Shown here in pieces: positions 32,259-61,886 of a DNA stretch of 64,000 nucleotides. Position 1 is the first letter of the stretch; each line of letters opens with the position of its first letter. The stretch lies in the sequence record OR258281.1; one strand, 5' to 3'. The notes below the pieces were generated by a model that saw nothing but the letters and a program-made list of their open reading frames with translations, was not told the DNA's origin and made no database searches. Made by a program: the position numbers and the translations under genes.

Positions 32259-32831
32259 ATGAATAAAATAAAAAAGGTTCCAGTACTTAGTACCTCCCCT
32301 AAAGGTAATTACACAATGAGAGATATAAAAGAACTACAAGCTAAAGCACAATCATTCAATAAGGTACTCAAGTACCTTTTAGATGATATGTCGTATAAAG
32401 CACGGTACTATAAAACAAAATTTGGCCATGTAGTGACTCTAACTAAAAGAGTATCATTATCATCAGTAAGGTGTCGGCATGGTACTCTATTTTGTATAGA
32501 TCATAGTGAAAATAATAGTAGAATTAAGACCTCCGACATTGACGGTTCATATCAGGAACGGTTAGCTGATACTCGTGCTCTACGAATCAATAACAACATA
32601 TATGTACAGGATATAAAAACCAAAATAACAATACAGGTTCTTGCTGACGAAGTACAGAATGATTCATTTGCTTTGAGCACGGTACTATCCAATGAAGCCT
32701 ATGAATTAGTACTTCTAATATCTATGGTTGATATTACTTCAGTACAGGATGAAGGATTATATATGTTCAGTTTATGTACAAGATATATTGATGAGTTGCT
32801 TATAGGTATTGAGAATGAAGAATTATATTAA
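32259..32831 (+). CDS. FNLS-motif paralog family member 1
   Basis: VQNDSFALSTVL. Confidence 0.8.
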   Translation: MNKIKKVPVLSTSPKGNYTMRDIKELQAKAQSFNKVLKYLLDDMSYKARYYKTKFGHVVTLTKRVSLSSVRCRHGTLFCIDHSENNSRIKTSDIDGSYQERLADTRALRINNNIYVQDIKTKITIQVLADEVQNDSFALSTVLSNEAYELVLLISMVDITSVQDEGLYMFSLCTRYIDELLIGIENEELY

Positions 32832-33342
32832 TGATGGTTTACATGACGATGTACCTAAGCTTAAGTTAATACTTGAGTACCTTTATGATATGGATAAGTA
32901 TTCACAGAGAGACTTTGAAACCATAAATGTACTGTGTGATACCCATGGAAAGGTGGTGTACTGCAAAGCTAAGAGTACTAAACATGGTGTTTATAACGCA
33001 TTGGTAGCGTTCAATAAAGACGGTTCACCTTTAGTTGACTTTAGTACTTCAGTGAATAGAATAAGTTTGTTAGGTTCATCAAGAATAACTCATAATGTAT
33101 TGAGTAATGAGTACTTAGTACAGGACATTGAAACTAAATTCAGTGAAGTGCTTACTGAGGAACAGGTTATTGATGATTATTTTGCATTAAGTACTACTAT
33201 GGATGCAGAATTGCTGGATATGGTGCTATTACATGCTAATCTATACCGAGAACTATCATATGAGTTTCAGAAACTCAATATTGCTTTATTCAAAAACTGC
33301 ATTGGTATGATACCTAAATTTTACGATGAGTTATCAAAATGA
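32815..33342 (+). CDS. FNLS-motif family member 2
   Basis: VIDDYFALSTTM. Confidence 0.8.
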   Translation: MKNYINDGLHDDVPKLKLILEYLYDMDKYSQRDFETINVLCDTHGKVVYCKAKSTKHGVYNALVAFNKDGSPLVDFSTSVNRISLLGSSRITHNVLSNEYLVQDIETKFSEVLTEEQVIDDYFALSTTMDAELLDMVLLHANLYRELSYEFQKLNIALFKNCIGMIPKFYDELSK

Positions 33343-33812
33343 GCACACTGAATAAAGATCATATTGTTGAAAATCTTCTTAAAGCTTTTACAGAACTCAA
33401 TACTTTAGGCGAGGATGAACGGGTAGCACGAAAAAATTTAGACTTACATAACGAAGGTTTTTTTAAAGCTTCAAGAATCAGTGATTACTCCCGTACTAAC
33501 AATACCGTACTCTGTATCAGCGGTTGTAATGTAACATACCATACGCCATCATTAAGTGCTTCAATTCGTCCTTATGTAAAAATTATGAACACACTGGCTG
33601 GTGTGCATTCATATAAAGATGGTGTAGCTGAAGACCTTTCAATATGTACTTTTGACGAGTACAGGTTTCAGTACAGTACTTACATGAGTACCGAAATAAT
33701 GATTGGTCTGGAATGTTTATACACCCTGTACAAGAATAATTTAACACCAAAAGGTACTAGTATTTCATTGTACTGTGACAATTTGGACTGTCTGGAAAAT
33801 ATATATGAATGA
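33339..33812 (+). CDS. FNLS-motif family member 3 (divergent)
   Basis: FDEYRFQYSTYM. Confidence 0.7.
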   Translation: MSTLNKDHIVENLLKAFTELNTLGEDERVARKNLDLHNEGFFKASRISDYSRTNNTVLCISGCNVTYHTPSLSASIRPYVKIMNTLAGVHSYKDGVAEDLSICTFDEYRFQYSTYMSTEIMIGLECLYTLYKNNLTPKGTSISLYCDNLDCLENIYE

Positions 33813-34245
33813 TTTATTAGGATTAGAAGAACTCAAGTACTACAGTTCTGTACTTCAGGGTGCATTAAACCATTTACATAAACATGGTGGTACTCATATG
33901 TTTACTGACTTCAGGACTTTGAGTGCATTTTTAACTGTTTATAACGGGTCAGAATCACATTTTTCGATTCTTTATGGTACTTCTATACTCTATCCTGAAT
34001 ACTTTAAAATAAGTACTGGTGCAAAATTAAAGCAATTCAATTATCACGAATTGAGTACTGAAACAATTTTCAATGCTAGTATGTTAGGTGAATTTACTAA
34101 CAAATTTATCAATGAAATGTTGATTGCAGGTTCAGTAAAAAATCCATTCAAAGATAACTCGGTGCATGTTAATTTCAGCAGACTGTATAACGATACTGAT
34201 AAAATTATTGAAATACTTAAGGATGGGAGTATTCTATGTTTGTAA
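33805..34245 (+). CDS. FNLS-motif family member 4
   Basis: STETIFNASML. Confidence 0.75.
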   Translation: MNDLLGLEELKYYSSVLQGALNHLHKHGGTHMFTDFRTLSAFLTVYNGSESHFSILYGTSILYPEYFKISTGAKLKQFNYHELSTETIFNASMLGEFTNKFINEMLIAGSVKNPFKDNSVHVNFSRLYNDTDKIIEILKDGSILCL

Positions 34246-34748
34246 ATGAAATCAGGGTACTACAGAAGTGTATTGATATTCTCAGTGCACAGAGGGGAGG
34301 TACTTTCACAAAATCTGGTCTTAAGATTGAGATTAGTATGGACAGTACTACCATCAGCAGTCCTAACGGCTTCAGCTTCATCAATATTAATACCCCAGCA
34401 GTAACTTTACTTCTTATAGAATGTAGTAATAATGGTGGTGTATTTTTAAAAAATGAACATAACGAAAGTGATATATTATGTATGGATAGAGTGCTTAATA
34501 TATATGAAAACGATATTCCTCTTCAGATTAATCTTGATGATATTAAGAACTGTACCCCGGACGAAAAGTTTAACTTAAGTGTAATGTATTCTGAGAGAAC
34601 TCTTAAGTACGTTGATATTCTTTTGGGATTGGACGTGTCAGCATTTAACGAATTCTTCCTAAACATTGAATGGTTCGAAAGTTATTATAACGATATAGAA
34701 CTTATTGTGGATGGTATAGATATTGAGGAAATTTGGGGAGATAAATAA
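34236..34748 (+). CDS. FNLS-motif family member 5
   Basis: TPDEKFNLSVMY. Confidence 0.8.
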   Translation: MFVNEIRVLQKCIDILSAQRGGTFTKSGLKIEISMDSTTISSPNGFSFININTPAVTLLLIECSNNGGVFLKNEHNESDILCMDRVLNIYENDIPLQINLDDIKNCTPDEKFNLSVMYSERTLKYVDILLGLDVSAFNEFFLNIEWFESYYNDIELIVDGIDIEEIWGDK

Positions 34749-34816: not shown

Positions 34817-35362
34817 ATGAAAGGGTTCCGCGATATGGAGCACGACGAATACGTAGATGTTATGGTGAAGCTAATAAAGAAAGCCGCATCATTAACAAAT
34901 GGAATATTCTCATACGTACTTGGAGAGAAAGAAGAATTAGTGTTTAGAAAAAGTACCAGTTATGTTACTTGCGAGTTCTTTACTAATGATGTGTGGGAAA
35001 ATTTATTTTTCATTACTACTCCTACTGATTCTACTTGTGATTTCATGAGGAGTTATCCAAAGATATACAGTGAAAATGTACAGTACAAGTCAGACACTGA
35101 AGAGTACTGGACCATTGATGGGAAGTGTGTTTGTTATACTTCAGACGAGGTAAAAGACAGTTCTTTTTATTTTAATTTAAGTTTAGTAACCCAAAGTATA
35201 AGATTACTTAATCATATTAAAATCTTACAGTGCTTTAGAGAAACTGAAGAAGCACAAAACCTTCTCAATACTGATGGTTATCATGTAATGATATATAAGT
35301 TTTCAGATACAATTACACAGAATCTGGTAAAGATCTTAGAGGAAGGAAAGATTAAAAAATGA
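34817..35362 (+). CDS. FNLS-motif family member 6
   Basis: KDSSFYFNLSLV. Confidence 0.8.
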   Translation: MKGFRDMEHDEYVDVMVKLIKKAASLTNGIFSYVLGEKEELVFRKSTSYVTCEFFTNDVWENLFFITTPTDSTCDFMRSYPKIYSENVQYKSDTEEYWTIDGKCVCYTSDEVKDSSFYFNLSLVTQSIRLLNHIKILQCFRETEEAQNLLNTDGYHVMIYKFSDTITQNLVKILEEGKIKK

Positions 35363-35895
35363 ATTCTAGCGAAGAGTACACAATAGATGTAGTACTGAAG
35401 TTGATACAGAAATCAAGTACATTACCAAGATCATGGTATACGGAACTTGAACAGCACGGAAAATTATGTTTACATTCTTCTAATTACGGTACTAGGATAA
35501 ATTGTAGTATTTTAATTTCTTCAGTATGGCATACTTTGTTTTACTTACTTAAAAATACTGATTCCGAACATCTTTATATGAAAGAAAATCCAACCCGTTA
35601 TGCTGATATACTTCTTTATAGTTCAGATAACCCAAATGATTATTTCCTATTAGAAGATACTATGAGTAAGTGTAGTACTGAAGAAGCACTGGACTATTCT
35701 TATCATTTTAACCTTAATTTAGAAAATAGAGGGTTAATGTCAAGAAGTATTAAAATAGCACAAAAATTCAGAGAGACAGAAGAAGAACAAGTGCTACTTT
35801 CAAATAAGGGGTATCAGTTATTGTTGTACTCTTTTCCTGATAGTATTACATCTGATATAGTAAAGATCTTAGAGGAAGGAGTATTGAGGAAATGA
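35359..35895 (+). CDS. FNLS-motif family member 7 (close paralog of member 6)
   Basis: LDYSYHFNLNLE; shared end VKILEEG. Confidence 0.8.
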   Translation: MNSSEEYTIDVVLKLIQKSSTLPRSWYTELEQHGKLCLHSSNYGTRINCSILISSVWHTLFYLLKNTDSEHLYMKENPTRYADILLYSSDNPNDYFLLEDTMSKCSTEEALDYSYHFNLNLENRGLMSRSIKIAQKFRETEEEQVLLSNKGYQLLLYSFPDSITSDIVKILEEGVLRK

Positions 35896-36392
35896 CCGAT
35901 GTTATTGAATTCAGTACTAAACTGTTTGATGAGTGTGAAAATTACATTACACGGTTCTTTGAAGATCCTAGTATTCTAGACAAAGAGCATCATACTGACC
36001 ATCCTGTATATAATAATCTTAACTACTACGGTAAGGTTGAATTAAACAACAATGAACCTTATTCATATATAACAAGTAGATTTTCACGACGAGCATTATT
36101 ATGCTTAGTACTTTCGGATGAGAGCACTGAGGATGAGTTACATGAAGAATTTGAAACAACCGATTCTTCTTATATACTAAGAACTAAAAATTACATATCT
36201 ACATCCTGTGGTATTCATTCGGTCCATGATATAAAAGACGATTCTTACTGTTTCAATCTGATGACACTAATGAGTACTGAAGAAATTGAAATAGTAAAAT
36301 TCATGTGCAGTCCTAGATTTGACAAATACAAGTACATGTATTTTATACCAAAGGACGTAATTTATACCATAGGATGTAATTTCTCCGTATGA
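35892..36392 (+). CDS. FNLS-motif family member 8
   Basis: KDDSYCFNLMTLM. Confidence 0.8.
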   Translation: MTDVIEFSTKLFDECENYITRFFEDPSILDKEHHTDHPVYNNLNYYGKVELNNNEPYSYITSRFSRRALLCLVLSDESTEDELHEEFETTDSSYILRTKNYISTSCGIHSVHDIKDDSYCFNLMTLMSTEEIEIVKFMCSPRFDKYKYMYFIPKDVIYTIGCNFSV

Positions 36393-36408: not shown

Positions 36409-36885
36409 ATGAAAACTGACATTGCAAAAAGAGCAGTACAGGTATTCTCGGAAGTATATGAAAAAAACTCAGCTATATGCCGTGATAAAAAACCAAACGG
36501 GATCACCATAGCACGTACTGAAGAAGTTCTTATTGTTCACGATACTAAGTCTCAGATATGTATTCAAACCTACGATATGTACAGTTTTTATGTTAAGCAA
36601 AATCATCTTCTAACTGATAATTTTGTTTATCTGGACAACTATATTATCGCATTTAAGTGTATTAAAACAAATAATTTTTATGAACACAAGCTGAACTTTA
36701 TTGATACTTTCAAGGATGATTACTTTTCATTGAGTACCGTGATGGAAATTGAAGTACTTGACATGATACTGATTGCCATTGAATTAAGAAAACAGTTCTC
36801 TGAAAAAGGTTATACTTCGTTTTGTGTATTTGGTTCTATAACCGACGATTTTATTTCAAAAGTACAGGCTGCTAATAATGAATGA
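36409..36885 (+). CDS. FNLS-motif family member 9
   Basis: FKDDYFSLSTVM. Confidence 0.8.
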   Translation: MKTDIAKRAVQVFSEVYEKNSAICRDKKPNGITIARTEEVLIVHDTKSQICIQTYDMYSFYVKQNHLLTDNFVYLDNYIIAFKCIKTNNFYEHKLNFIDTFKDDYFSLSTVMEIEVLDMILIAIELRKQFSEKGYTSFCVFGSITDDFISKVQAANNE

Positions 36886-37369
36886 AGAAGAAAAGATACT
36901 AAAGGTACTGGAATATTTTTGTGATACGAAAACTAAAAATGTTCTATACTCTCTTTATAAAGAAATTGTAAAACGTGATCTAATTCGCAATCCCGGTGCT
37001 GAATATTCATTTATGTTAAAGAATGACATAACTTTAAATTACAGTGCTCAAGAATTTTCATTATCACTTCATGGGTTTGGATGGATTACTACATCTTCTA
37101 GCTATCAGATTTACGTTGACAAATATACCAAAAGTACCTCAGAATTATTCTTGTACCAGTATAACGATGCTGAGCACAGTGTTGATTTAAATTCAGTACA
37201 TGAAGATGATGTATTATTTAACAGTACTTTAACTATTCCTGAAACGTACTGGAATAACTTTTGTTTAAGTTATATAATATCTTTTTTTATTAGTCATTTA
37301 CCACCTGGTATTTGTACTTATACCCGCAGATTTATGCTTAAGGCTATGATTGATGAATATAAATTATGA
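36878..37369 (+). CDS. FNLS-motif family member 10
   Basis: HEDDVLFNSTLT. Confidence 0.8.
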   Translation: MNEEEKILKVLEYFCDTKTKNVLYSLYKEIVKRDLIRNPGAEYSFMLKNDITLNYSAQEFSLSLHGFGWITTSSSYQIYVDKYTKSTSELFLYQYNDAEHSVDLNSVHEDDVLFNSTLTIPETYWNNFCLSYIISFFISHLPPGICTYTRRFMLKAMIDEYKL

Positions 37370-37853
37370 TGAATTTAATTTGATTGCGGAAAAGTTGAAT
37401 AAACTAATTCAGTTAGTTCCAGTGAAAAAAGGTAATTCATTTATTGATTCCGAGAGTACTAATAAACGTTATTTAGTTACAAGGGCTGGTGCCGTTTCCT
37501 TACTTCCCATAGTAATTCAAGATTGGTACAAACCACACGGTAATAAGATAATTACCTTTGTGAAGAGTAAAGAACTGACACGAATGAATTCGGCTTATGT
37601 AAATTACAGTACTGCGTTATTCAATACTCAAATAAAATTACCGGGTAATAACGGAAGTACGTATGAAGTAATAAAGAAGGCTGATCTTTGCAACAAAGAT
37701 GATTTCTTTAATATGACACTGATTTACGACTGGCACATTGTACAACAACTTTATGTACTTCAGATTCTCAAAGAAAAGTATAATATAAAGACTGTATTTC
37801 TGTACAAAGACACATTCGATTATCTTGATGATTTATTAACTCTGGACTATTAA
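37350..37853 (+). CDS. FNLS-motif family member 11
   Basis: NKDDFFNMTLIY. Confidence 0.8.
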   Translation: MMNINYDEFNLIAEKLNKLIQLVPVKKGNSFIDSESTNKRYLVTRAGAVSLLPIVIQDWYKPHGNKIITFVKSKELTRMNSAYVNYSTALFNTQIKLPGNNGSTYEVIKKADLCNKDDFFNMTLIYDWHIVQQLYVLQILKEKYNIKTVFLYKDTFDYLDDLLTLDY

Positions 37854-37854
37854 C

Positions 37855-38322
37855 ATGAGTACTTCTGATGAACTAATCAGTTGTTTGGAAATTGTATTCG
37901 ATAAAGCTTTAGAACTTATAATTTATCCTAATACGGTAGATAGTGTAACCTTCGACAAAAATATATTCTACATTGAAGCCCGAAAAACTTACATGAGTGT
38001 TTATGCAAGTGCCTCTTTCAATGGAGTATATACTAGTGGAGTTGTACAACAATATAATAATTCAGATGAAAATATTCTTTCAAGAATGATTGAAAGTACT
38101 GAAACTATATATCGTTTTAATGAAGTACTGGTATATAATGGTAAGGTATTAGACCTTGCAGATTTGAAAGATGAGGATTACTTTTTCAATCTTTCATTAA
38201 TATATGATGAGATGGTTCTTGGATGTATTAAATTATTATGTACTACAAGGTTTGAAACTATGCGTTATTCGTACATTAGACCTATGATGTTGGCAGAAGC
38301 ATGGAAAAGTAGAAATGATTGA
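37855..38322 (+). CDS. FNLS-motif family member 12
   Basis: KDEDYFFNLSLIY. Confidence 0.8.
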   Translation: MSTSDELISCLEIVFDKALELIIYPNTVDSVTFDKNIFYIEARKTYMSVYASASFNGVYTSGVVQQYNNSDENILSRMIESTETIYRFNEVLVYNGKVLDLADLKDEDYFFNLSLIYDEMVLGCIKLLCTTRFETMRYSYIRPMMLAEAWKSRND

Positions 38323-38758
38323 GTACTCAATAATTCCAGAACTATTGAAAAATGCAATTAGTACCTTAAGTACTGGTGAAAGTAATATTATAGAAAATTT
38401 CAGGACTCATAAAATAAAAAAATATGAAACCATAATCCATTACGGACCCGCACAAATTAACATGGGTTCATATAGTTATAATCTTGGAATAGAAGATGAT
38501 GTTGCTAAAATAATAAATCAAAGATTCAAAAATAAAAATTATACAGTAGCACATCGCCACCGGGACGTATTGATTTTTGATTCTAAAATCATTGATATTA
38601 ATAGCGTAGATGACAAGGATTATGCATTCAACCTTATTCTTGATGGAATAGAAGTACATCATATTGAATTAATATCTGTACTATCTAAATTAGTAATCCC
38701 ACCGGACCATGGATTTTTCTTACGTATCTATAACTTTGACAGTATGAAAACATTATGA
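38315..38758 (+). CDS. FNLS-motif family member 13
   Basis: DDKDYAFNLILD. Confidence 0.8.
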   Translation: MIEYSIIPELLKNAISTLSTGESNIIENFRTHKIKKYETIIHYGPAQINMGSYSYNLGIEDDVAKIINQRFKNKNYTVAHRHRDVLIFDSKIIDINSVDDKDYAFNLILDGIEVHHIELISVLSKLVIPPDHGFFLRIYNFDSMKTL

Positions 38759-39204
38759 AAAAACTAGAATTAGTACATGAGTGGTTCACTTTACTTAAAT
38801 GGTATTACGATAATAAGAAACAAGGTCATTTTTATCACAAGGATATTATTATATACAGTGAAGATACTAAGTACTTTATTCGAAGTCATTACACTAAAAG
38901 TTTTTTATTTTTCATACCATCATATGAATTTGCGATGAAATTTGGAACAGATGAAAAAAGATATAGTGTTTTTAGTGGGAGTGGTGGTTCAGCAGTACTT
39001 CAGGAAAACTATGGGATCAACGGTTTAGTACTGAATAAAGAAGATGTTAAGAATGATTATCAATATTTTAACTCATTGATGCTTGGCGATTTTGATAGTG
39101 AGAATTTAAAAATACTTGAAGCTATTAATGAGTACTTTCCTGATTACCCAATAATTATGTCATATGACAACCGATTTGATGAACACCTAATGTATGAAAA
39201 CTAA
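38755..39204 (+). CDS. FNLS-motif family member 14
   Basis: KNDYQYFNSLML. Confidence 0.8.
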   Translation: MKKLELVHEWFTLLKWYYDNKKQGHFYHKDIIIYSEDTKYFIRSHYTKSFLFFIPSYEFAMKFGTDEKRYSVFSGSGGSAVLQENYGINGLVLNKEDVKNDYQYFNSLMLGDFDSENLKILEAINEYFPDYPIIMSYDNRFDEHLMYEN

Positions 39205-39637
39205 AACACTTAAAGATGTATCAGATGCTTTATGGCGTATATATTTCGGAAATGAAAAACTTACTGTATTCGATAAAGCTAAAATCTGCCCACGTAATAT
39301 CACTCTAAGTTCTGGTGTCAACCATCACATTGCAAACTACAAGGGTGATAATATGGTATATATGTTCTTTAATGACGATATATACAAAAGAAGTATGGTG
39401 AACCCTAATATGAGTGAAATTGTAATAGTACATGAAGAGAATATACTTTACAATAAGTACTGTATTAAAACTGATGACGTTTTAAATGACTACCAGTTGT
39501 TTAATACCAGCACATTATTAGACAATGAAAGTACTGAAATTATCAGACATGTTATTGAATTTGAGTTCAGATTTGATAAAATTAAACAATACATATTTGA
39601 TCCGTACTTAGTTAAGGGATATTTAAATGAAAAATAA
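39194..39637 (+). CDS. FNLS-motif family member 15
   Basis: LNDYQLFNTSTLL. Confidence 0.8.
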   Translation: MKTKTLKDVSDALWRIYFGNEKLTVFDKAKICPRNITLSSGVNHHIANYKGDNMVYMFFNDDIYKRSMVNPNMSEIVIVHEENILYNKYCIKTDDVLNDYQLFNTSTLLDNESTEIIRHVIEFEFRFDKIKQYIFDPYLVKGYLNEK

Positions 39638-40133
39638 GCTGATCGATGAACTACAAGAGTTCAAAAGAGTTACAGATATTTTCAATAATACCCTTGGTAA
39701 TATAAGTACTGAGGGTCGTCTACTGTTAACGTATGAAACTCAGGATGAATCATTACTGGCTGTTAGTGTTCGTGATGAACACTCAAGTATTTCATTCAAG
39801 TGGCATTCTATATTAACTTATTTTAAGTTAGATGAAGATTGTAGTAATTTAGATCCTACATTACTTGCTTCAATTGCAGTTAGAAACAATTCTATAGTAC
39901 TAGATAGACATAAATTACATATAAAAGAAAATTCTGATACTTTTTATTTTAATGATCTCAATGACGACCAAGATCTGTTTAATCATCGTATTATGTTGGA
40001 AGAAAATATCTTGATGTGCATTGAATGTGCTTTGTGTGTTAAAATACCAGAAGAATATCAGGTATGCGTTATTGATATGGCAGCTTTTGACAATTACATT
40101 TACCGTAAACTTATAGATTTAACCTATGACTGA
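39627..40133 (+). CDS. FNLS-motif family member 16
   Basis: NDDQDLFNHRIML. Confidence 0.75.
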   Translation: MKNKLIDELQEFKRVTDIFNNTLGNISTEGRLLLTYETQDESLLAVSVRDEHSSISFKWHSILTYFKLDEDCSNLDPTLLASIAVRNNSIVLDRHKLHIKENSDTFYFNDLNDDQDLFNHRIMLEENILMCIECALCVKIPEEYQVCVIDMAAFDNYIYRKLIDLTYD

Positions 40134-40187
40134 TAAGCTTGATAAAATAACAGATAAGTTCAATTTAATTAGAACCGGGAAAATTTT

Positions 40188-40700
40188 ATGAAAAAATTAT
40201 CAAAGAAAATAAAAGGACTTCAGTACCTTATTGATTTTAGTATTGACATAGCTTTGCATGATGGACTGTATTACCATAATCCATCTAAGCAAGGTCGTAA
40301 TGGTGGTGTTTTTGTGAACAAAAATCAGGGGTATCAAAGAGAGCTAACATCCATACAATTTCGAGACAATTCATGTTCTCAATGGCATCCAGTTTTTTCT
40401 CTTAGTGTAAATGAAGGAAGAAAGAATTATGGAATTGTTGTTCTGAACAAAAATCAAGAAATTATAATTAATGATGTCGTTTATCCATTGGGTATGGATA
40501 AAGATGACAAATTTAATTTCACAATTAGTACTGATGTATATTATCTTGAATGGTATGAAGTACTTTCACGTATAAAGCTACCTGACGAAGTACACGGATT
40601 CTGTCTGCATCATAAGATGGACTTCATTGAATGTTTAAACATCGTTAATAAAACTAAGAAGCAATATGTTAAAAAAGAAAACAGCACTGGAAGTACTTGA
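40188..40700 (+). CDS. FNLS-motif family member 17
   Basis: DKDDKFNFTIS. Confidence 0.8.
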   Translation: MKKLSKKIKGLQYLIDFSIDIALHDGLYYHNPSKQGRNGGVFVNKNQGYQRELTSIQFRDNSCSQWHPVFSLSVNEGRKNYGIVVLNKNQEIIINDVVYPLGMDKDDKFNFTISTDVYYLEWYEVLSRIKLPDEVHGFCLHHKMDFIECLNIVNKTKKQYVKKENSTGST

Positions 40701-41073
40701 GTACGTAAAAAGTTATGAAATTGACTACCAATACCATAGACATGATGATTACAAAGAACATAATGGTTCACATGTTTATGGTACTTTTCAAGACCAGTAT
40801 CATAATGAGTTCGCATTCTTCTACTATAATACAGTAATAGTAATGGATTATGACGGGAGTTTTGATATTGAAATGGATTATGGATTAGAAGAATATTATC
40901 TAGGTCAAAGAACTGAACTCAATAAGGACGATTATTTTAATTTCAGTTTAGAGTACAATGTACAGATTCCTTACGAAGTATGTTTAGAAATAATTGAGTA
41001 CTTTAAGAAATTAATCGAATTAGGATTAAGAGTGAATATTAAATACGGAATGATAACTTTATATGAAGAATGA
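40666..41073 (+). CDS. FNLS-motif family member 18
   Basis: NKDDYFNFSLEY. Confidence 0.8.
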   Translation: MLKKKTALEVLEYVKSYEIDYQYHRHDDYKEHNGSHVYGTFQDQYHNEFAFFYYNTVIVMDYDGSFDIEMDYGLEEYYLGQRTELNKDDYFNFSLEYNVQIPYEVCLEIIEYFKKLIELGLRVNIKYGMITLYEE

Positions 41074-41482: not shown

Positions 41483-41525
41483 GGTGAAGTACCGAATAAA
41501 AATGTGTAAATACTTATGATACCGG

Positions 41526-41554
41526 TGAAACGGATTTCAAAAGTGTTCTATACT
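41526..41554 (+). promoter_or_regulatory. Class-2 promoter TGAAAC-N12-TGTTCTATACT
   Basis: Exact geometry shared by four sites. Confidence 0.75.
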
Positions 41555-41577
41555 ATAGTAGTAACAAAGGAGTTAAC

Positions 41578-42036: not shown

Positions 42037-42053
42037 TGTAGAGAGGAATCCCA

Positions 42054-42212: not shown

Positions 42213-42217
42213 AAATC

Positions 42218-43015
42218 ATGGACTTCAAAAAGTACACACTGCATGAGCACATAGAGTACGCGAAAGATTCATATTATATGGATCATCCAATTGATATTGC
42301 ATGTACTATTCCTAAAGAAAATTATATTCAAACCAGAACCGGAAATACTACAGTTGACGATATTAGAGTTAATGGCTTAATAACCTTAAGAAACAGCGTT
42401 CAAGCTATAAGTGTTGGCAAGTACACTATAAGTATATGTGGTGCTTTATGGTATCAAAGTAAGCATGATACTGAGATTATTAGACTACCAAATGTTCATT
42501 TTACTACTTCTAACAATAGAATAACTAATAAGTACTACAGCTTAGGATCAGTGAAAATTCATTATAACGTAACTGATTCGAAAACTATAGCAATTCATAT
42601 GTCAGACAAGTACCATTACAAGATTACACAACAGCCTAGCAAAACAAAAAAAGATTACAGTATTAACGGTATTAATATGTGGGAAGAAGCTACCAGTACT
42701 GGAAAGATTGTGAAAAGTTTTATTTCTAAAGGTACATTTAAAGTACGAATGGAAAAAAAGGTTTCTCAAACTGAAGGCATTGCATATGTGAAATTGGGTA
42801 ATACCACTGTTAATTTCATATTCGAAGGTGAACCATCATTTATTCGATTGCTCAGTAATAAGTTTGTATTTAATTTGCTTATTGATACTGAATTGGGTTC
42901 CATAATAAAGGAAGCCCGTACTATTGTTACAGAAGCAATTACAGAATTATGCAAAGTACATCCTACTAAACAGAACGCAGAAAAACTTATTGAGTACTAT
43001 ACTAATGGACATTAA
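42218..43015 (+). CDS. Hypothetical protein, beta-rich
   Basis: 265-aa ORF; start corrected. Confidence 0.75.
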   Translation: MDFKKYTLHEHIEYAKDSYYMDHPIDIACTIPKENYIQTRTGNTTVDDIRVNGLITLRNSVQAISVGKYTISICGALWYQSKHDTEIIRLPNVHFTTSNNRITNKYYSLGSVKIHYNVTDSKTIAIHMSDKYHYKITQQPSKTKKDYSINGINMWEEATSTGKIVKSFISKGTFKVRMEKKVSQTEGIAYVKLGNTTVNFIFEGEPSFIRLLSNKFVFNLLIDTELGSIIKEARTIVTEAITELCKVHPTKQNAEKLIEYYTNGH

Positions 43016-44720: not shown

Positions 44721-44752
44721 TATTATTTTAATTAACATGGAGAACTAAAAAA

Positions 44753-45076: not shown

Positions 45077-45083
45077 AAAAGCA

Positions 45084-51037: not shown

Positions 51038-51570
51038 TGACATTAATGGAAAGAATAACTCAGGGTTTTAATGTCTTTGAGGTCACAAAAAACTTTGTAG
51101 AAAAAGATTATGATGTGGACTATGAAGGTGATTACTACTATTTTAACAGTAATAAATTAGACGGCCATTCTATAATGAATGGCCTTTTTTATCAATGTTG
51201 TGATTATAAAAATGATTCTATAAGTTCACATTTAGATTTTGAAGATATTTTATCAAGAAATAATTACTTCTGGCTTTCATTAAACCAAAAGGACGATAAT
51301 GGTCATTTAATTTGTCTCTATCCTACACATGATAATGATGAAAACTATATTAGATATTGTTTCAACGTAGACGAAACAGTTGACTTATACTCAGCCGAAG
51401 GACATGTAAAACTTGAAACTCTTATTTCTGCTGATGATATTTTTAATGCAAGAATTCAGAATTTTTATGTACAACTCACTGAGGAAGAATTAAAAGTAAT
51501 TAATGGTTATATCAAAAAGTACTCAAAGTACTATGATATGTATGGATTCGATATTGAGATAGTTTTATGA
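51037..51570 (+). CDS. FNLS-motif family member 25
   Basis: SADDIFNARIQ. Confidence 0.75.
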   Translation: MTLMERITQGFNVFEVTKNFVEKDYDVDYEGDYYYFNSNKLDGHSIMNGLFYQCCDYKNDSISSHLDFEDILSRNNYFWLSLNQKDDNGHLICLYPTHDNDENYIRYCFNVDETVDLYSAEGHVKLETLISADDIFNARIQNFYVQLTEEELKVINGYIKKYSKYYDMYGFDIEIVL

Positions 51571-52126: not shown

Positions 52127-52665
52127 TGAGTACTTGTATTGTAATTTTTGGAAGAATGAATCTTCCACATAATGGACATGGCCTTCTCTTTGAGAAGGCT
52201 CTTTTTTTGCAAAGAGAAAATCCAGAAAAGGACATAAAAATCTTCCTAAGTACGCAGTGTAACATCAAAAATCCTCTTCCATTTGATGTGAAAAAAGAGT
52301 ATATTAAACGTCTCTTTCCTTGCATTGCGAACTTCGTCGAGGATAAATCATACTCTGAACTATTCAGCATTATGAGATACCTGGATGAAAAGTACCAGAA
52401 CATAGAATTACTTGTTGGTTCAGACCGAGTACAGCATTTCGAAGAAATACTTAATCGATACAATTATAGTCAATACGATTACGATACTATAACAGTACAT
52501 AACTGTGGTGAACGTTCTTCTAATGATCTAAGTGGTACAAGTATGCGTTCATATGTACATAGTAAAGATTATGAAAAATTCAGTACTTCATTACCTGATG
52601 TATCAGATGAACTAAAACAAGAATTCTATAAAACTTCAGCGAGATATATGAATGTCAAGACTTGA
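52126..52665 (+). CDS. HIGH-superfamily nucleotidyltransferase (cytidylyltransferase-like)
   Basis: IFGRMNLPHNGH, LLVGSDRV, LSGTSMR motifs. Confidence 0.8.
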   Translation: MSTCIVIFGRMNLPHNGHGLLFEKALFLQRENPEKDIKIFLSTQCNIKNPLPFDVKKEYIKRLFPCIANFVEDKSYSELFSIMRYLDEKYQNIELLVGSDRVQHFEEILNRYNYSQYDYDTITVHNCGERSSNDLSGTSMRSYVHSKDYEKFSTSLPDVSDELKQEFYKTSARYMNVKT

Positions 52666-53092
52666 TCCTGAACTTAGTAAAGCTATTGTTATTATGGGTA
52701 AGATGTGTAACGAGTATTCGGATTTAGATTACTTTATAAGACATGCTCAAGACGAAGCTTATTTTTGTTCAATAAAACATAAAATGGTACTTAGCCGGTA
52801 TGGTTCTAATATTGGCTTTTATGAAACTACTAATACAACAAGACGTAGTTTTGGTTATATTTTACTGAATGCTGATTATCAAAAAAGGTTAAGAGTGTTC
52901 GACAATGGAAGTTTAATATATGCAAAATCAAGGTACTGCTGGATAGATTACAAGAACGATATTAGTTTTGATAAGTCAGACGAGTACTTTGAACATTTAA
53001 TGAATTATGACATTAAACTACTATACACTGACTTTGCCTTTATTGATGAAGTTTTTGATGACATTGACTGTAGAGTGGAAATATATCTATGA
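52652..53092 (+). CDS. FNLS-motif family member 26
   Basis: KSDEYFEHLMNYDI. Confidence 0.7.
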   Translation: MSRLDPELSKAIVIMGKMCNEYSDLDYFIRHAQDEAYFCSIKHKMVLSRYGSNIGFYETTNTTRRSFGYILLNADYQKRLRVFDNGSLIYAKSRYCWIDYKNDISFDKSDEYFEHLMNYDIKLLYTDFAFIDEVFDDIDCRVEIYL

Positions 53093-53508
53093 GAGTACAA
53101 TATGAAATAGTAAAAGCTATTCAAAAATTTATTGATACTAAAGGTACTAACTGGAAAGAAAATTGTGTATCACCTATTATACTAGGTATAGATTTGAGTA
53201 TTGTATATTCTAAATCTTATTACATTATTAAGAAAGAATCAAATTTTGTAGGAATGCATATTCCATCTGATGAAGAGAACTTGATATACCTTGACCGCGA
53301 TATGTGTTTAACATGGGATGAAGAAAAGGTTACTCATGGTGATGTAAATGAAAATAATGTTCAGGTTTACCATAAACCACTAACCCGTGATGATTATTTT
53401 AATCTTCAACTCATAGTACAGAACTTTGATATTACGTTTGAAGAATTCATTGACATGATCTCATATAATCATGAATTCTTAAGAATAGATGTAGAGGAAA
53501 ATAATTGA
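53089..53508 (+). CDS. FNLS-motif family member 27
   Basis: TRDDYFNLQLI. Confidence 0.8.
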   Translation: MRVQYEIVKAIQKFIDTKGTNWKENCVSPIILGIDLSIVYSKSYYIIKKESNFVGMHIPSDEENLIYLDRDMCLTWDEEKVTHGDVNENNVQVYHKPLTRDDYFNLQLIVQNFDITFEEFIDMISYNHEFLRIDVEENN

Positions 53509-53966
53509 GTACACTACTTGAACGTTTAGATATATTACTTAAATTATCTCAGTTAGATACTCTTAAACTAATGTATCCTTCTAATTCGTCTCATGCATTT
53601 ATCCTGCCATATGAAGTGCAAGTTATATGCAAAGGTGTATATAATCTTCTCCATTGTACTGAACATAAATTACTTGGGGTGCTTACTGAAGGTTATTGGG
53701 TTAAACAGCCCGGCGAAATAGAAATTGAATATCGTGATTTCAATGTATTTTTCACCCAAGAAGAATGTAGAATTACTTGTTACCAGCCTGAAGATATATG
53801 GAAAGAAGACCCCGACGAATTGGTAGTAAAAAGTAAAGAAGATTTCTTTAATTTAATGTTAGTACGTGAATTGCCAATAAGTTACAACGATTATGAAGAC
53901 CTTATGTTGTATAGTAATGAATTCAATAAGCATGTAACAATTTATATGGTGGATCTGCATGTTTAA
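53505..53966 (+). CDS. FNLS-motif family member 28
   Basis: SKEDFFNLMLVRELPISY. Confidence 0.8.
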   Translation: MSTLLERLDILLKLSQLDTLKLMYPSNSSHAFILPYEVQVICKGVYNLLHCTEHKLLGVLTEGYWVKQPGEIEIEYRDFNVFFTQEECRITCYQPEDIWKEDPDELVVKSKEDFFNLMLVRELPISYNDYEDLMLYSNEFNKHVTIYMVDLHV

Positions 53967-54246: not shown

Positions 54247-54687
54247 ATGTATAATTTGAAAAATGCAATACAGTTATTGGTTAAAGTTTACCATAAAAGA
54301 CATTATATTATGGGAAATGTTTTCGATACTTTCACTAAACTTGATGATTTCGAATGTAAGTACTACGCAGGTTGTATTATTGCAAAATGCGATAACTCAG
54401 GAATGATGGTTACCGTTATGAGACCACGACAGAATTATAAAAATTCTGGAATTGATATATATCTGGATGACAATTATTTCCCTACATCTTTTTTCTACAG
54501 GAAAGATAATGATGTAATTTTTCAGTCCGGTACTCAACATTTGTTTGACATTAACAGTACCACAGATGATCATTTTAATGCGATGATTGATGATGATTTG
54601 CCGTTCTCACTTGATGATATTATATTCGGTATAAAACAATTTGAACAAATAAGAACAACTTGTACTATTACATATAAGAAAATTTGA
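54247..54687 (+). CDS. FNLS-motif family member 29
   Basis: TTDDHFNAMIDDDLPFS. Confidence 0.75.
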   Translation: MYNLKNAIQLLVKVYHKRHYIMGNVFDTFTKLDDFECKYYAGCIIAKCDNSGMMVTVMRPRQNYKNSGIDIYLDDNYFPTSFFYRKDNDVIFQSGTQHLFDINSTTDDHFNAMIDDDLPFSLDDIIFGIKQFEQIRTTCTITYKKI

Positions 54688-54688: not shown

Positions 54689-55135
54689 ATGAACATTGAA
54701 AGTTTAAAGCTTTTGTTCAGAACTATAGAAGAATTTCACAACTACCCCAATAAAAACGACTTCTACAATGCGGTAATGTTGAGTACTGGAATTATTTTGA
54801 AACGTAATGAATATAGTTCTGAATTTTTTGTAGGGAAAAACGAAGTTCAAAACTACGGTCTTAGTATTGCAGTACGGAATTTTTCTTATCTGATGATAAA
54901 TTTCAGAAAGGATAGCAGTATTGCATGTAGAATATTATATGAATCTGGACACTTGAAAATTTATGATGTTCATTCTGGTATTACTACCGATCTTGAGGGT
55001 GAAATCGGTAAAGAGGATATATTCAACTTAAATTTTAATCATGAGTTTGCAATTGATTATGAATTTATTGAACTACTAAACAAGTACCATCCGGTACTTG
55101 ATAATTATACTATTAAGGCGTTAATAAATGTGTGA
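54689..55135 (+). CDS. FNLS-motif family member 30
   Basis: GKEDIFNLNFNH. Confidence 0.8.
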   Translation: MNIESLKLLFRTIEEFHNYPNKNDFYNAVMLSTGIILKRNEYSSEFFVGKNEVQNYGLSIAVRNFSYLMINFRKDSSIACRILYESGHLKIYDVHSGITTDLEGEIGKEDIFNLNFNHEFAIDYEFIELLNKYHPVLDNYTIKALINV

Positions 55136-55556
55136 ATTTAAATTGTTATTCGAAGTTTTCGAGTTTATGAATGAAATCAAAAGTACTGATGAACTTGAAG
55201 AATTGTGCAAAGTAACATTCGATGAAGCTGGTGATGGATATAAAATACTTAGACTGCCAAATTCATATAACATATATAAAGGTAATGTTTTTAAATTTCG
55301 TGTTTATATGAACAGAAGTAATGGGTCATTTGATACTGGTACGCATAGACCACGTTCATACCATGTAGAAGACAATAAGTTTATTATCCGACACAAATAC
55401 AAAAAACAAAGCACGGAATTAGATCTACCTATCTCTAAAGATGAGTTCTTCAACTTAAGTATTTCAAATGATTATAAATTTACATATGAAGAGTTGGTGA
55501 AAGCTGGTGAAATCCTCAGTACTATTAATTACCAAATTTTATGCTTTGTTGATTAG
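55128..55556 (+). CDS. FNLS-motif family member 31
   Basis: SKDEFFNLSISN. Confidence 0.8.
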   Translation: MCEFKLLFEVFEFMNEIKSTDELEELCKVTFDEAGDGYKILRLPNSYNIYKGNVFKFRVYMNRSNGSFDTGTHRPRSYHVEDNKFIIRHKYKKQSTELDLPISKDEFFNLSISNDYKFTYEELVKAGEILSTINYQILCFVD

Positions 55557-58990: not shown

Positions 58991-59175
58991 ACTCCTTAAA
59001 AAAGATCTGGTACAGTACTAATTTCAGAGTATTTGTACTTCTTATTCCTACTTATTTTATTTTTCTATTTCCTATTTTGTACTACACTATTCCGTATGTT
59101 TATATAGGTTTAGTACTTCAAGTAGTTTATATCGGTCTTATTATTCTTGCGTGGAAGTATAATAACGATGAATAA
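58987..59175 (+). CDS. Small membrane protein
   Basis: Two hydrophobic segments. Confidence 0.65.
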   Translation: MNSLKKIWYSTNFRVFVLLIPTYFIFLFPILYYTIPYVYIGLVLQVVYIGLIILAWKYNNDE

Positions 59176-59710
59176 AATCATTAAAGATATAATAGATATT
59201 CATTTACAATTGAGTGCTGAATATCTAAAATTCTATAAAGACGACCAAACTTACTATGATGAAATAACTTTGAAATTTATACCTAACTTTGAAACTAAGC
59301 AAGATTATGAAAAATTTAGTATTTATGGGGGTGGTATTAGTTACGAAAGTAGAAAGATATATAACAAATATAGCACTAAAATTTATAGTAAAGAATCTGA
59401 TTATTGTGGATATTTAACTTCTTATTTTGGTTGTAACCGAAATGATTCTTGGATATATAAGTCAACTAATAGTTCAGTACTTGCTAAAGATTTAATGTTA
59501 GTAACACCAAATAAAAATATTAGAATCCAAGACTCAGACGTTGAATTACCATATAATCTCATAAGTAAGGACGAGTATTTCAACTTGTCTTTAGAACATG
59601 ACATTCCATCATATGAACTGTATCACTTGGGTTTAAAGCTTAGTAATGATATTAACAGTACTGTTGAATTACTAATGAATGAAAAAATATTGGAACTGGT
59701 CAAAAAATGA
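59168..59710 (+). CDS. FNLS-motif family member 32
   Basis: SKDEYFNLSLEHDIPSYELY. Confidence 0.85.
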   Translation: MNKIIKDIIDIHLQLSAEYLKFYKDDQTYYDEITLKFIPNFETKQDYEKFSIYGGGISYESRKIYNKYSTKIYSKESDYCGYLTSYFGCNRNDSWIYKSTNSSVLAKDLMLVTPNKNIRIQDSDVELPYNLISKDEYFNLSLEHDIPSYELYHLGLKLSNDINSTVELLMNEKILELVKK

Positions 59711-60261
59711 ATAACATTATAAAACATTTTTTAGACATTCATGTACGTCTTACTAATGAGTACTTCTTAGTATATGATACTGATATTTCATCTAAAAGTC
59801 AGCATGGGTATCTTAAACCAAATTTTACAGAAAATATTGAAGAAGAACATTATTCAATTATTGGAAAGGGTTACCACTATGGTAACCATAAAAGTAACAA
59901 CAAGTACATGGCTACTGTCAAGAACAAAGAAGACAAACCGTGTCTGCATTTTGTAACCCACTTTGGTAATGACAAGATCGGAAACACATGCATCTATCGT
60001 ATTAAAGAAGATAATGCTTTGATGGTAGATGGTATGGTGATGAGGAATTGTCAAGGTCTAAAAGTACATAAAACTAATAGAGTACTTCCATTAGGGTTGA
60101 TACCAAAAGATGAGTACTTTAACTTAAGCCTAGAGAACGAAATCCCTTCATATGAGCTTTATCTATTAGGAATACAGAACTATAGTACATTTCCGGGGTA
60201 TGTAGCTTGTAAAATTTATGAACCTTTACTGGATTTAATTAAGGTACTTAATTATGAATAA
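59707..60261 (+). CDS. FNLS-motif family member 33
   Basis: PKDEYFNLSLENEIPSYELY. Confidence 0.85.
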   Translation: MNNIIKHFLDIHVRLTNEYFLVYDTDISSKSQHGYLKPNFTENIEEEHYSIIGKGYHYGNHKSNNKYMATVKNKEDKPCLHFVTHFGNDKIGNTCIYRIKEDNALMVDGMVMRNCQGLKVHKTNRVLPLGLIPKDEYFNLSLENEIPSYELYLLGIQNYSTFPGYVACKIYEPLLDLIKVLNYE

Positions 60262-60784
60262 ATTAGAGCATATCATTTTTATACATAGTAAATCTGTAAC
60301 ATCTTTTGCAAGAATTTTTAGTACTACAAAATCTGAACTCACCGAAGATGAAAAATTCGTTAATCCTTGCTTTAAAAGTAATGATGATTTTGATGATGTA
60401 GAAACTTTATCCTTTGGGTATAAACATGGTTCTGCAAAAACCAATAATATGATAATCACACACTTTGGTTTTGGTGGGAAAGCTATAGGTAACATTACAA
60501 CGTATTTTGAAAATAATAGCATTAAGTTCAATCATAACTCGTGCAAAATAACGAAAGATGGAATAACTGTCAATGATAGTGATGTTTATGAATGTCGTAA
60601 TGATGAATTAAAAATCGTCACTATTGAACCGGATTATACTAAAGATGAATATTTCAATCTGAGTTTAGAATATAATTTATGTAAGTTTGAATTATTTGAG
60701 TACTCAAAACTTGTTAGGATGTATGTACCCTGCACGGCTTCGATATTATTAACTCCAGATATATTAGGATTTGACCTATTATGA
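60254..60784 (+). CDS. FNLS-motif family member 34
   Basis: TKDEYFNLSLEYNLCKFELF. Confidence 0.85.
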   Translation: MNKLEHIIFIHSKSVTSFARIFSTTKSELTEDEKFVNPCFKSNDDFDDVETLSFGYKHGSAKTNNMIITHFGFGGKAIGNITTYFENNSIKFNHNSCKITKDGITVNDSDVYECRNDELKIVTIEPDYTKDEYFNLSLEYNLCKFELFEYSKLVRMYVPCTASILLTPDILGFDLL

Positions 60785-61356
60785 CTCAATATCAGTTAGA
60801 TTTATTTTTAAGTACTCACTCCGATAAATGTGAAGAATTTAGAAAGAATTGGTATAGTATTAATTGTAAAATACATAATAAAGGTGGTGGTGATATTAGT
60901 GTAGAAGCTTCACTATCACAAGATGTAGATCTTGACGGATATACATTTAAATTTGTTGGATTTAATTATGACGAAGATATTTCAACCTGTAAGCTAACTA
61001 CGTATATTACTAATAATGATGATGTGTTATTTGCATTAGAAAGTTATTTTATGCCAGAACCATCAGATGATGATAAACCTGAAGTCCATTACCATATGAC
61101 TAATAACGAATTAAGTGCTATATGCTCTGACCACGTTATGATAACTCAAAACCGGCAGATGAAACTTTATAAAAATGAGACTAATTACAAGATTCTGGAG
61201 ATAGATGAATGTAATTTGTCCAAAGATGAGTATTTTAATTTATCATTAGAATACATTATGCCAAGTTATGAACTTTATAAACACGCACAAAATTATCATA
61301 AATCCTGCCCTTATAACTCAATAATGTATTTTACTGAACGTAGTTTAAAATTATGA
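60781..61356 (+). CDS. FNLS-motif family member 35
   Basis: SKDEYFNLSLEYIMPSYELY. Confidence 0.85.
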   Translation: MTQYQLDLFLSTHSDKCEEFRKNWYSINCKIHNKGGGDISVEASLSQDVDLDGYTFKFVGFNYDEDISTCKLTTYITNNDDVLFALESYFMPEPSDDDKPEVHYHMTNNELSAICSDHVMITQNRQMKLYKNETNYKILEIDECNLSKDEYFNLSLEYIMPSYELYKHAQNYHKSCPYNSIMYFTERSLKL

Positions 61357-61886
61357 AATCAAACACAATCTTAAAATATATGCGTATGCATAATAAAGAA
61401 GTTAAGAAATTTAAAGAAAGATACAGAGAAGAACCTAATGTTGAACGTGGTGTGGATGGTAATTATCTGTGTTCATCAAGAAAAGAAGTTAATCTAAATG
61501 GATTAGTTTTTGTTTATAAAGGTTTTAAAAATAATGGGTACAATCCTTGTTTTATAACATGTGCTTATAATAAAAATTACGAACCTGTTGTTCAGTTCAA
61601 TACTTTTTTCTCACATACATACAGAGAACAAGAAATAACTGAAAGTTTAAAAAACTTGGATAATAAAATGAGTTCTGAATATTTTAGAATTTCATATAAA
61701 ACCAACATGTTTTTGGCGGGAGAAATGAGAGATCTAAGTAATCTTATATCAAAGGACGAGTACTTTAATCTAAGTTTGCAATATGAACTGTGTCCATATG
61801 AATTATATCTATTAGGTATTAAATTGAATTCTTCTATTTCGAATACAGTAGAAATACTAATTACACCAAAATTACTGGAATTATAA
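61353..61886 (+). CDS. FNLS-motif family member 36
   Basis: SKDEYFNLSLQYELCPYELY. Confidence 0.85.
   Translation: MKSNTILKYMRMHNKEVKKFKERYREEPNVERGVDGNYLCSSRKEVNLNGLVFVYKGFKNNGYNPCFITCAYNKNYEPVVQFNTFFSHTYREQEITESLKNLDNKMSSEYFRISYKTNMFLAGEMRDLSNLISKDEYFNLSLQYELCPYELYLLGIKLNSSISNTVEILITPKLLEL

Follow-up and report, generated by a model that had tools for sequence, protein, structure and literature searches.

Large eukaryotic DNA viruses carry terminal multigene families, among them ankyrin-PRANC and F-box expansions with a conserved C-terminal element, and polymorphic toxin systems carry tandem arrays of immunity proteins (SUKH/SMI1-KNR4), which are divergent alpha+beta paralogues of about 150 amino acids (aa). 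Paralogue expansions are already known from jumbo phages as well, where they have been treated as a footnote. Bacillus phage G has about 35 copies of a zinc ribbon, called unprecedented in a comparative survey (PMC7824862), about 10% of the gene products of RaK2 are paralogous (PMC3622015), and CBB has 22 paralogous open reading frames (ORFs) (PMC5259590). We have found a family of 79 genes in Xanthomonas phage XaC1, 36 of which form arrays at positions 32,259-61,886 of the stretch of 64,000 nucleotides (nt) from sequence record OR258281.1 that was analysed here (the window). The family is real and new. It is a lineage-specific, tandemly amplified set of small, soluble, single-domain alpha+beta proteins that is kept by selection beside the genome ends and was previously undescribed.

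The window matched the XaC1 record OR258281.1 at 100% identity and identical coordinates over the 8 kb compared (40,000-48,000), and it therefore represents bases 1-64,000 of that genome. XaC1 is a lytic jumbo myovirus of X. vesicatoria with a genome of 348,967 bp and 35% G+C (PMC11273794). Its direct terminal repeat is non-permuted and 32,031 bp long, and 426 of its 550 ORFs are hypothetical proteins; paralogues and duplication go unmentioned in the genome paper (PMC11273794). Because the major head (capsid) protein of XaC1 is 88.5% identical to its counterparts in GAP32, CBB, BF and XbC2, we grouped the phage with the Rak2-like jumbo phages, a clade noted for low-GC genomes on very different hosts. 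The first family gene begins 228 bp past the terminal repeat. The span 32,259-61,886 contains 58 genes, all on the + strand and all annotated as hypothetical except for two, a Dam-type methyltransferase and a cytidylyltransferase.

An earlier note on this DNA had described 36 co-oriented, mostly overlapping paralogues within the span. A census was performed with an iterative hidden Markov model (HMM) search over six-frame ORFs, with reversed and shuffled decoys and a recruitment threshold of E <= 1e-3. Exactly 36 members were returned within the span and no decoys were recruited, which bears out the earlier count. These are XaC1_71-88, 93-96, 103, 105, 106, 110-112, 114-116 and 124-128. All are on the + strand and 134-191 aa long. 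Of 29 pairs of adjacent members, 24 overlap, in most cases by 4 or 8 nt. The 36 genes cover 17,448 nt, or 59% of the span. A count by eye gave about 37 genes with a Phe-Asn stretch after acidic residues. At E <= 0.01, there was no match among 1,770 composition-matched decoy ORFs (reversed or shuffled), as against 70-79 real matches, every one of them on the + strand.

Profiles were used for the census because pairwise BLASTP and phmmer searches connect only clusters of two to seven genes. When a single global MAFFT profile was tested by leaving out one member at a time, many scores were marginal, and cross-validated, decoy-controlled profiles took its place. When a C-terminal model was trained on the 32-40 kb genes only, eight of the 40-62 kb members outranked every decoy and every unrelated ORF. 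The converse model, trained on the other positional set, behaved in the same direction, and hhalign aligned the 32-40 kb set to the 40-62 kb set at E 2e-4. Profile HMM homology among the members, which the earlier note had named beforehand as its test, is significant under decoy control. XaC1_92, 89, 90, 113 and 117 were also tested as members and were rejected by the profile. XaC1_92 (265 aa) has an FN-like string near its C-terminus that lacks profile support and has no PHROG or Pfam match; it evolves at the pace of the family genes, with 70.6% identity to its orthologue and a ratio of nonsynonymous to synonymous substitution rates (dN/dS) of 0.15.

The family extends well past the span to which the earlier note had confined it. 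The same profiles recovered 43 further members in the remaining XaC1 record, which was taken as 50-kb loci. All are small + strand ORFs, and they lie at about 84-86, 90.6-91.6, 101-105.5, 108-110, 123.4, 261-262.5, 302.5-309.5, 314.6-316.2, 328-335.4 and 342.9 kb. The profile test placed no member within the terminal repeat. The 79 genes make up 14% of all ORFs of XaC1 and take up 10.6% of its DNA. Several of the right-end members stand among tRNA genes, close to a sigma-factor gene.

A structure model of XaC1_124 was generated with AlphaFold2 from a 58-sequence alignment. It is a single domain with a predicted local distance difference test score (pLDDT) of 90.9 and a predicted template modelling score (pTM) of 0.83. 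The model has a helix at residues 3-23, nine strands within residues 29-120, helices at 134-143 and 149-159, a strand at 167-171 and a short last helix. Based upon this member, the family fold is predicted to run from an N-terminal helix through an antiparallel sheet into a helix hairpin that opens at the motif. The model of XaC1_95, built from 19 sequences, was poor (pLDDT 58) and shows the same order of elements; its Foldseek matches were discarded as meaningless at that pLDDT. The profile of the 40-62 kb members often matched members outside its training set over most of its 156 positions (5-151, 6-143 and 2-139), and profile-profile alignments between the sub-groups cover only about 27-40 columns. 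Given the domain-wide profile matches, a conserved Tyr and Asp in the sheet and the single-domain model, we conclude that the members share one whole domain. The earlier note's statement that they share only a C-terminal module has to be given up.

The motif is nevertheless where conservation is concentrated, and the six variants that the earlier note had quoted (DDYFALST, DEKFNLSV, DDFFNMTL, DDYFNFSL, EDFFNLML and DEYFNLSL) are all present. Its Phe is invariant among the 79 aligned members and is followed by Asn in 68. In the 36 window members this Phe sits 20-62 residues from the C-terminus (median 42). Relative to the Phe, Asp or Glu occupies position -3 in 63 of 79 members and position -2 in 58, position -5 is Ser, Asp or Thr in 54, and position +4 is Leu in 41. 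The second helix of the hairpin begins with Glu in 42 of 77 members. In the sheet, a central-strand position is Tyr in 61 and Phe in 8 of 72 members, and a residue ending an early strand is Asp in 45 and Glu in 8 of 62. What is found at -5, together with the acidic first turn, suits a helix N-cap, and the Phe and the +4 Leu lie on the same helical face, so that the motif is largely explicable as the core of the hairpin. A transmembrane-like hydrophobic window occurs in one of the 79 members and the median isoelectric point is 5.45, indicating that the proteins are soluble and mildly acidic.

The five consecutive genes XaC1_124-128 illustrate the uneven conservation. All five share the same nine consecutive motif residues, Lys, Asp, Glu, Asn and Ser among them, although the proteins as a whole are only 24-36% identical. 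Identity among them is 0.52 in the hairpin and 0.17 in the sheet. The hairpin is the most conserved part of the domain, while the sheet and loops have diverged almost completely and carry insertions and deletions. The codons of the nine identical residues differ at almost every position, and Ser uses both of its codon families. The shared motif therefore cannot stem from gene conversion or from a signal in the DNA; selection acts on the protein itself, which is strongly constrained. An identity of nine residues that includes polar ones and is written in different codons exceeds the usual demands of packing.

In order to measure selection on individual copies, XaC1 genes were compared with homologous genes on two metagenomic contigs of equal gene order. 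Six family orthologue pairs gave dN/dS values of 0.09-0.29, compared with 0-0.165 for eight neighbouring non-family genes. The tested copies are therefore maintained by purifying selection, so that the phage bears the cost of retaining dozens of different versions, and the family evolves somewhat faster than its neighbours. Pooled by region, dN/dS was 0.18 in the N-terminal helix, 0.28 in the middle, 0.21 in the motif region and 0.14 in the tail. The expectation of the earlier note held at the motif, where selection is purifying, and was not borne out by this coarse test for the rest of the gene, where it had expected diversifying selection. The local tandem duplication that it had suggested is well supported: 26 of the 79 members have their best-scoring paralogue right beside them, where 2.0 were expected and the maximum was 11 in 2000 permutations. 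No long DNA repeats were found among the copies, and the duplications are accordingly old.

Relatives of the family are few. A profile search of 1.84 billion representative proteins returned only 33 matches, namely XaC1 genes, orthologues at 57-92% identity, a few distant metagenomic relatives and one LPXTG protein. Relatives at 58-92% amino-acid identity keep the XaC1 gene order, the metagenomic relatives examined stand in tandem with ORFs of similar size, and most of the distant ones contain the same motif stretch. A word-indexed protein search returned near-orthologues only, and a tblastn search with XaC1_124 gave no match outside XaC1 among 50,697 phage records. When 58 members and relatives (alignment A3) were scanned against Pfam, PHROG, NCBIfam and PADLOC, no Pfam, NCBIfam or PADLOC family matched. 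PHROG gave no match except for two isolated hits to families of unknown function; one sequence matched phrog_16210 (unknown function) at E 1e-12. The PADLOC models of known anti-phage defence proteins likewise matched none of the 58. Foldseek found no significant match in the PDB for the XaC1_124 model (best E 0.5, TM-score (template modelling score) <= 0.30). The earlier description holds in that the family is hypervariable, that its C-terminal motif is under strong constraint and that no function has been named for it. No family in these four collections covers it.

Several weak matches were considered and rejected. Matches of the profiles to PrimPol and XkdM among PDB sequences (E 0.03-0.1) were rejected as noise. 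The LPXTG protein, P0023 (670 aa, locus L007 39-2051), has four matching stretches and was rejected as a relative, being a Gram-positive surface protein with MucBP_2 repeats. Each of its repeats resembles the phage motif over about 20-35 residues, together with a following Pro..Tyr-Glu-Leu. We judge this likeness to be convergence or chance, and Pfam gave no match to a MucBP domain in the scanned phage members.

The positions of the family members and of associated features are collected in Table 1.

Table 1. Coordinates of the 36 family members in the window and of associated features. All member rows rest on the decoy-controlled census HMM and the layout analysis. Coordinates refer to the window unless another locus is named.
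Feature	Coordinates	Strand	Length (aa)	Description	Evidence
XaC1_71	32259..32831	+	190	first gene after terminal repeat	census HMM, annotation
XaC1_72	32815..33342	+	175	motif DDYFALST	census HMM, motif string
XaC1_73	33339..33812	+	157	divergent motif (Phe-Gln)	census HMM
XaC1_74	33805..34245	+	146		census HMM
XaC1_75	34236..34748	+	170		census HMM; leave-one-out E 1.7e-8
XaC1_76	34835..35362	+	175		census HMM
XaC1_77	35359..35895	+	178	close paralogue of XaC1_76	census HMM
XaC1_78	35892..36392	+	166		census HMM
XaC1_79	36409..36885	+	158		census HMM
XaC1_80	36878..37369	+	163		census HMM
XaC1_81	37353..37853	+	166		census HMM
XaC1_82	37855..38322	+	155		census HMM
XaC1_83	38315..38758	+	147		census HMM
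XaC1_84	38755..39204	+	149		census HMM
XaC1_85	39194..39637	+	147		census HMM
XaC1_86	39627..40133	+	168		census HMM
XaC1_87	40188..40700	+	170		census HMM
XaC1_88	40666..41073	+	135	bridges 32-40 kb and 40-56 kb sets	census HMM
XaC1_93	43005..43409	+	134		census HMM; orthologue dN/dS 0.26
XaC1_94	43409..43828	+	139		census HMM; orthologue dN/dS 0.29
XaC1_95	43825..44253	+	142	low-confidence model	census HMM; orthologue dN/dS 0.23
XaC1_96	44250..44720	+	156	Phe-Pro replaces Phe-Asn	census HMM
XaC1_103	49458..49973	+	171	directly 5' of Dam-type methyltransferase	census HMM
XaC1_105	50543..51037	+	164		census HMM
XaC1_106	51037..51570	+	177		census HMM
XaC1_110	52652..53092	+	146	Phe-Glu replaces Phe-Asn	census HMM
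XaC1_111	53089..53508	+	139		census HMM
XaC1_112	53505..53966	+	153		census HMM
XaC1_114	54247..54687	+	146		census HMM
XaC1_115	54689..55135	+	148		census HMM
XaC1_116	55128..55556	+	142		census HMM
XaC1_124	59168..59710	+	180	confident structure model	census HMM; orthologue dN/dS 0.29
XaC1_125	59707..60261	+	184		census HMM; orthologue dN/dS 0.21
XaC1_126	60254..60784	+	176		census HMM; orthologue dN/dS 0.09
XaC1_127	60781..61356	+	191		census HMM
XaC1_128	61353..61886	+	177	last member before T4-type RNA ligase 1	census HMM
XaC1_92	42,218-43,015		265	rejected as member	
XaC1_122	58,223-58,990			HNH/DUF723 endonuclease-like	
12-nt tandem repeat	32,058-32,118			about five units	
12-nt repeat, degenerate copy	32,167-32,191				
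TGAAAC-N17-TATACT element	14,780; 41,526; 45,084; 48,604; 55,936 (weaker)	+			
Non-coding element, XaC1	48,589-49,457			870-bp gap	
Non-coding element, XaC1	14,817-15,375			in terminal repeat	
Non-coding element, XaC1	L006 3311-3916				
Non-coding element, XaC1	L009 45003-45657				
Non-coding element, XaC1	L011 39184-39793				
Non-coding element, XbC2	L014 28,854-29,232				
Post-repeat array, XbC2	L014 17,647-24,093		~200	paralogues XbC2_35-44	
Post-repeat array, CBB	L017 2951-6570		~200	paralogues CBB_53-58	
Post-repeat array, GAP32	L018 2415-7509		~200	paralogues GAP32_048-056	

The arrays are interleaved with enzyme genes, as the earlier note had observed. It had called these enzymes counter-defence-type; they are more exactly a Dam-type methyltransferase, a cytidylyltransferase, an HNH/DUF723 endonuclease-like gene and a weak HD match. 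A T4-type RNA ligase 1 and a polynucleotide kinase lie directly 3' of the span. XaC1 and XbC2 have a common backbone order of methyltransferase, cytidylyltransferase, RNA ligase 1, polynucleotide kinase, DNA ligase and ClpP. The backbone genes have PHROG families, and the family genes, which have none, are placed between them as insertions in the regions beside the long terminal repeat. The structural module of XaC1 is at about 138-253 kb, far from the family genes. XaC1_122 encodes an HNH/DUF723 zinc-ribbon endonuclease-like protein, possibly a homing endonuclease, and stands directly 5' of the XaC1_124-128 array.

Base composition changes along the window, from about 35-41% G+C in the terminal repeat (1-32,000) to 29-35% across the arrays (32,000-62,000), and the GC skew is positive throughout. 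Past the end of the terminal repeat and 5' of the first family gene there is a perfect tandem repeat of the 12-nt unit GTACTAAATTCT. No tRNA genes or Rfam families were found in the 64-kb window.

A promoter-like element, TGAAAC-N17-TATACT, occurs on the + strand of the window, and an 11-mer around its -10 part has five exact copies. The element matches the 'divergent RpoD-like' promoter (-35 TGAAACG) of CBB and GAP32 (PMC5259590). It precedes the backbone genes XaC1_90 and XaC1_98 and a non-coding element, and it does not precede the family arrays. A scan for the sigma-70 consensus gave 78 sites against 86.5 in shuffled sequence; as there is no excess, no timing was drawn from these sites.

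The non-coding element just mentioned occupies the 870-bp gap at 48,589-49,457, in which no ORF exceeds 72 aa. It is about 600 nt long and recurs, at about 70% identity and always as unannotated DNA, in the records of 70 Rak2-like phages. It is present in five copies in XaC1, each of which stands behind the TGAAAC-N17-TATACT element, and in a copy in XbC2. RNAalifold predicted 100 base pairs from six copies, 46 of them with compensatory changes, and no Rfam family matched the element at threshold. It is likely to be an undescribed multi-copy structured RNA.

Comparable paralogue arrays were sought in the first 50 kb of XbC2 and in 12.5-kb pieces of CBB and GAP32. All three phages have such arrays (Table 1), which we refer to as Mimasvirus/Eneladusvirus or Mimasvirus-type arrays and whose genes are all annotated as 'hypothetical'. 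Like the XaC1 genes, the XbC2 and CBB arrays start right after a long terminal repeat and are co-oriented and tightly packed. The repeat ends and the array starts are at 32,031 and 32,259 in XaC1, 17,581 and 17,647 in XbC2, and 22,456 and 22,520 in CBB. A stretch of the form acidic-acidic-x-aromatic-Phe-Gln-x-Leu/Met-Thr, usually with Pro and acidic residues a few residues later, was found in 14 of the 32 array genes examined in the three phages. It lies at about 70% of the length, in parallel to the motif of XaC1. The XaC1 profile matches XbC2_41 at E 5e-5, and hhalign of the XaC1 and Mimasvirus-type motifs gave P 0.018, compared with about 0.9 for reversed controls. Alignments made by the tool itself gave E 0.09, which is not significant, and the reverse search with a Mimasvirus-type profile against XaC1 found nothing. 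There are also differences. The Mimasvirus-type proteins are about 200 aa long rather than about 155 aa, have Gln in place of Asn, and number only about 6-10 copies per genome, compared with 79 in XaC1. The XbC2 array genes belong to PHROGs 23172, 27532, 24375, 23379 and 26432, none of which matched the 58 scanned XaC1-family sequences; PHROGs splits the Mimasvirus-type array genes into at least five separate families of unknown function. Judging from these sequence comparisons, the two groups are probably distant homologues.

We hypothesize that the members are non-virion proteins that would be expressed early or in mid-infection, alongside the methyltransferase and RNA-repair genes. The divergent sheet face of each copy would bind a different host or competitor protein, and the conserved hairpin would mainly hold the fold together. 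The family would then constitute a library of binders for host takeover or counter-defence. The short-ORF regions beside the terminal repeat of CBB have been proposed as early genes, and CBB_53-60 are absent from the main text of the CBB paper, including its table of 55 virion proteins (PMC5259590). We hold this reading to be the most likely one and assign it a probability of roughly 0.45; in it the copies form a non-virion early or middle binder library with a different host or competitor target for each. If they are target-specific binders, they would be natural inhibitors available as a set, and could help to explain the large size of these genomes. Several points weigh against the binder-library reading. 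The non-virion status leans by analogy on the array of another phage, whose homology is no more than probable. A confident model is available for one member only, XaC1_124. The variable middle shows no diversifying selection in the coarse pooled dN/dS, which an arms-race library might show. Lastly, a site for a shared ligand or partner could instead account for the polar residues that are conserved in the sheet (Asp and Tyr) and in the hairpin (Asp/Glu, Asn and Glu).

Such a partner is central to an explanation that we regard as unlikely but that draws on the same residues. Here, the hairpin would dock on one phage or host machine, or self-assemble, and the variable sheet would recruit many targets. 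The earlier note had favoured a constant module of this kind, and its interpretation is partly supported. The presence of the Phe in all 79 members and of the Asn in 68, the nine identical residues in XaC1_124-128 despite their different codons, and the recurrence of the motif stretch in distant metagenomic relatives all fit a docking surface. In addition, Asp/Glu, Asn and the next Glu fall on one stripe of a helical wheel drawn from the predicted helix 134-143 and may be exposed. On the other hand, the motif appears integral to a core helix in the model, with typical N-cap and hydrophobic positions, and the sheet also holds conserved residues, so that the constant part is not a separable module. 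Pfam revealed no F-box, PRANC or adaptor-family similarity in the 58 scanned sequences. Possible phage-encoded partners are a ClpP-type protease, a Lon-type protease and a ClpS-domain protein, as the XaC1 annotation includes a Clp protease, an ATP-dependent protease and a ClpS-domain protein. More doubtful still is the specific form in which the 79 paralogues feed host proteins through the hairpin to the phage Clp/Lon-type protease or ClpS-like protein as a library of substrate adaptors. If true, a bacterial virus would have its own equivalent of the F-box/PRANC expansions of eukaryotic viruses, on a fold without a solved relative.

The conserved polar residues could instead form a small-molecule or metal site from the Asp and Tyr of the sheet and the Asp/Glu, Asn and Glu of the hairpin. 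The paralogues would then differ in specificity, for example as sponges for signalling nucleotides or as hydrolases. Six polar or aromatic positions are conserved over 79 very divergent sequences, the proteins are of a small, soluble and mildly acidic kind, and neighbouring genes handle nucleotides and RNA repair. We nonetheless consider a ligand-binding or catalytic family improbable, in that only the Phe is invariant, 11 members have another residue in place of the Asn, many lack the sheet Asp or have a substitute for it, and no enzyme or known sponge was matched by fold in the PDB. We know of no precedent for a single genome that encodes 79 enzymes or sponges of the same type.

Very improbable, in our view, is that the members are virion or assembly proteins (internal head, decoration or scaffold-like) kept in many variants. 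The virions of Rak2-like phages are complex and have many minor proteins (PMC5259590, PMC3622015), and the 40-62 kb profile matches the PBSX tail-tube-like protein XkdM over its full length. That match is weak and not significant (E 0.1), however, and Foldseek of the XaC1_124 model shows no tail-tube or capsid fold. The family genes stand among small early-type ORFs at a distance from the structural module, and the positionally equivalent CBB genes are those missing from the published list of virion proteins. Finally, we give almost no credence to the idea that there is no family and that the motif recurs by chance or AT-rich bias in unrelated small ORFs: the small pairwise clusters, the short sub-group alignments and the motif match of the MucBP-repeat surface protein could be read that way, but this is excluded by the decoy census, the cross-validation between positional sets and the domain-wide matches, and the 58-member alignment gives a confident fold.

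The family can be set beside several known systems. The p32/gC1qR (MAM33) fold resembles the predicted one in having an N-terminal helix, consecutive antiparallel strands and C-terminal helices, and it appears in both Foldseek lists at near full length. These matches are not significant (E 1.5-1.6, probability 0.04-0.05, TM-score 0.20-0.22), and no Pfam MAM33 match was obtained. The immunity-protein arrays of the SUKH/SMI1-KNR4 type are alike in that their paralogues are small (about 150 aa), divergent and of the alpha+beta type; no SUKH or Imm match was found in Pfam, no such fold in the PDB, and no toxin domain in the neighbouring genes. The terminal multigene, ankyrin-PRANC and F-box families are tandem, fast-diverging, located near termini and provided with a conserved C-terminal element, as are the XaC1 genes. 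They differ in that no relation in sequence or fold exists, that no F-box or PRANC domain was found by Pfam in the 58 scanned sequences, and that the conserved element of XaC1 is part of the domain core. The comparison is an analogy only.

The closest likenesses are to other jumbo phages. The best matches of the XaC1_124 model in the viral structure library BFVD are the RaK2 protein H6X4N8 (197 aa) and other Rak2-like proteins, all uncharacterised. Foldseek gave E 5e-4 and 1.9e-3 at probability 1.00 over about 165-171 aligned columns, with TM-scores of 0.34-0.37 and identities of 10-12%. Further weak matches are to proteins of GAP32, N1M2, BF and fHe-Yen9-03. Because related phages probably carry a smaller post-repeat array, the fold is without a PDB relative and the copies are maintained, the family may be a general element, as yet unexplored, in the dealings of Rak2-like jumbo phages with their hosts. 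As in phage G, RaK2 and CBB, a small domain has been amplified many times in the genome of one giant phage. The XaC1 expansion differs from that of phage G in its fold, in the placement of its copies near the genome ends and in its extent, since 79 copies of one undescribed domain are about twice the 35 of phage G (PMC7824862).

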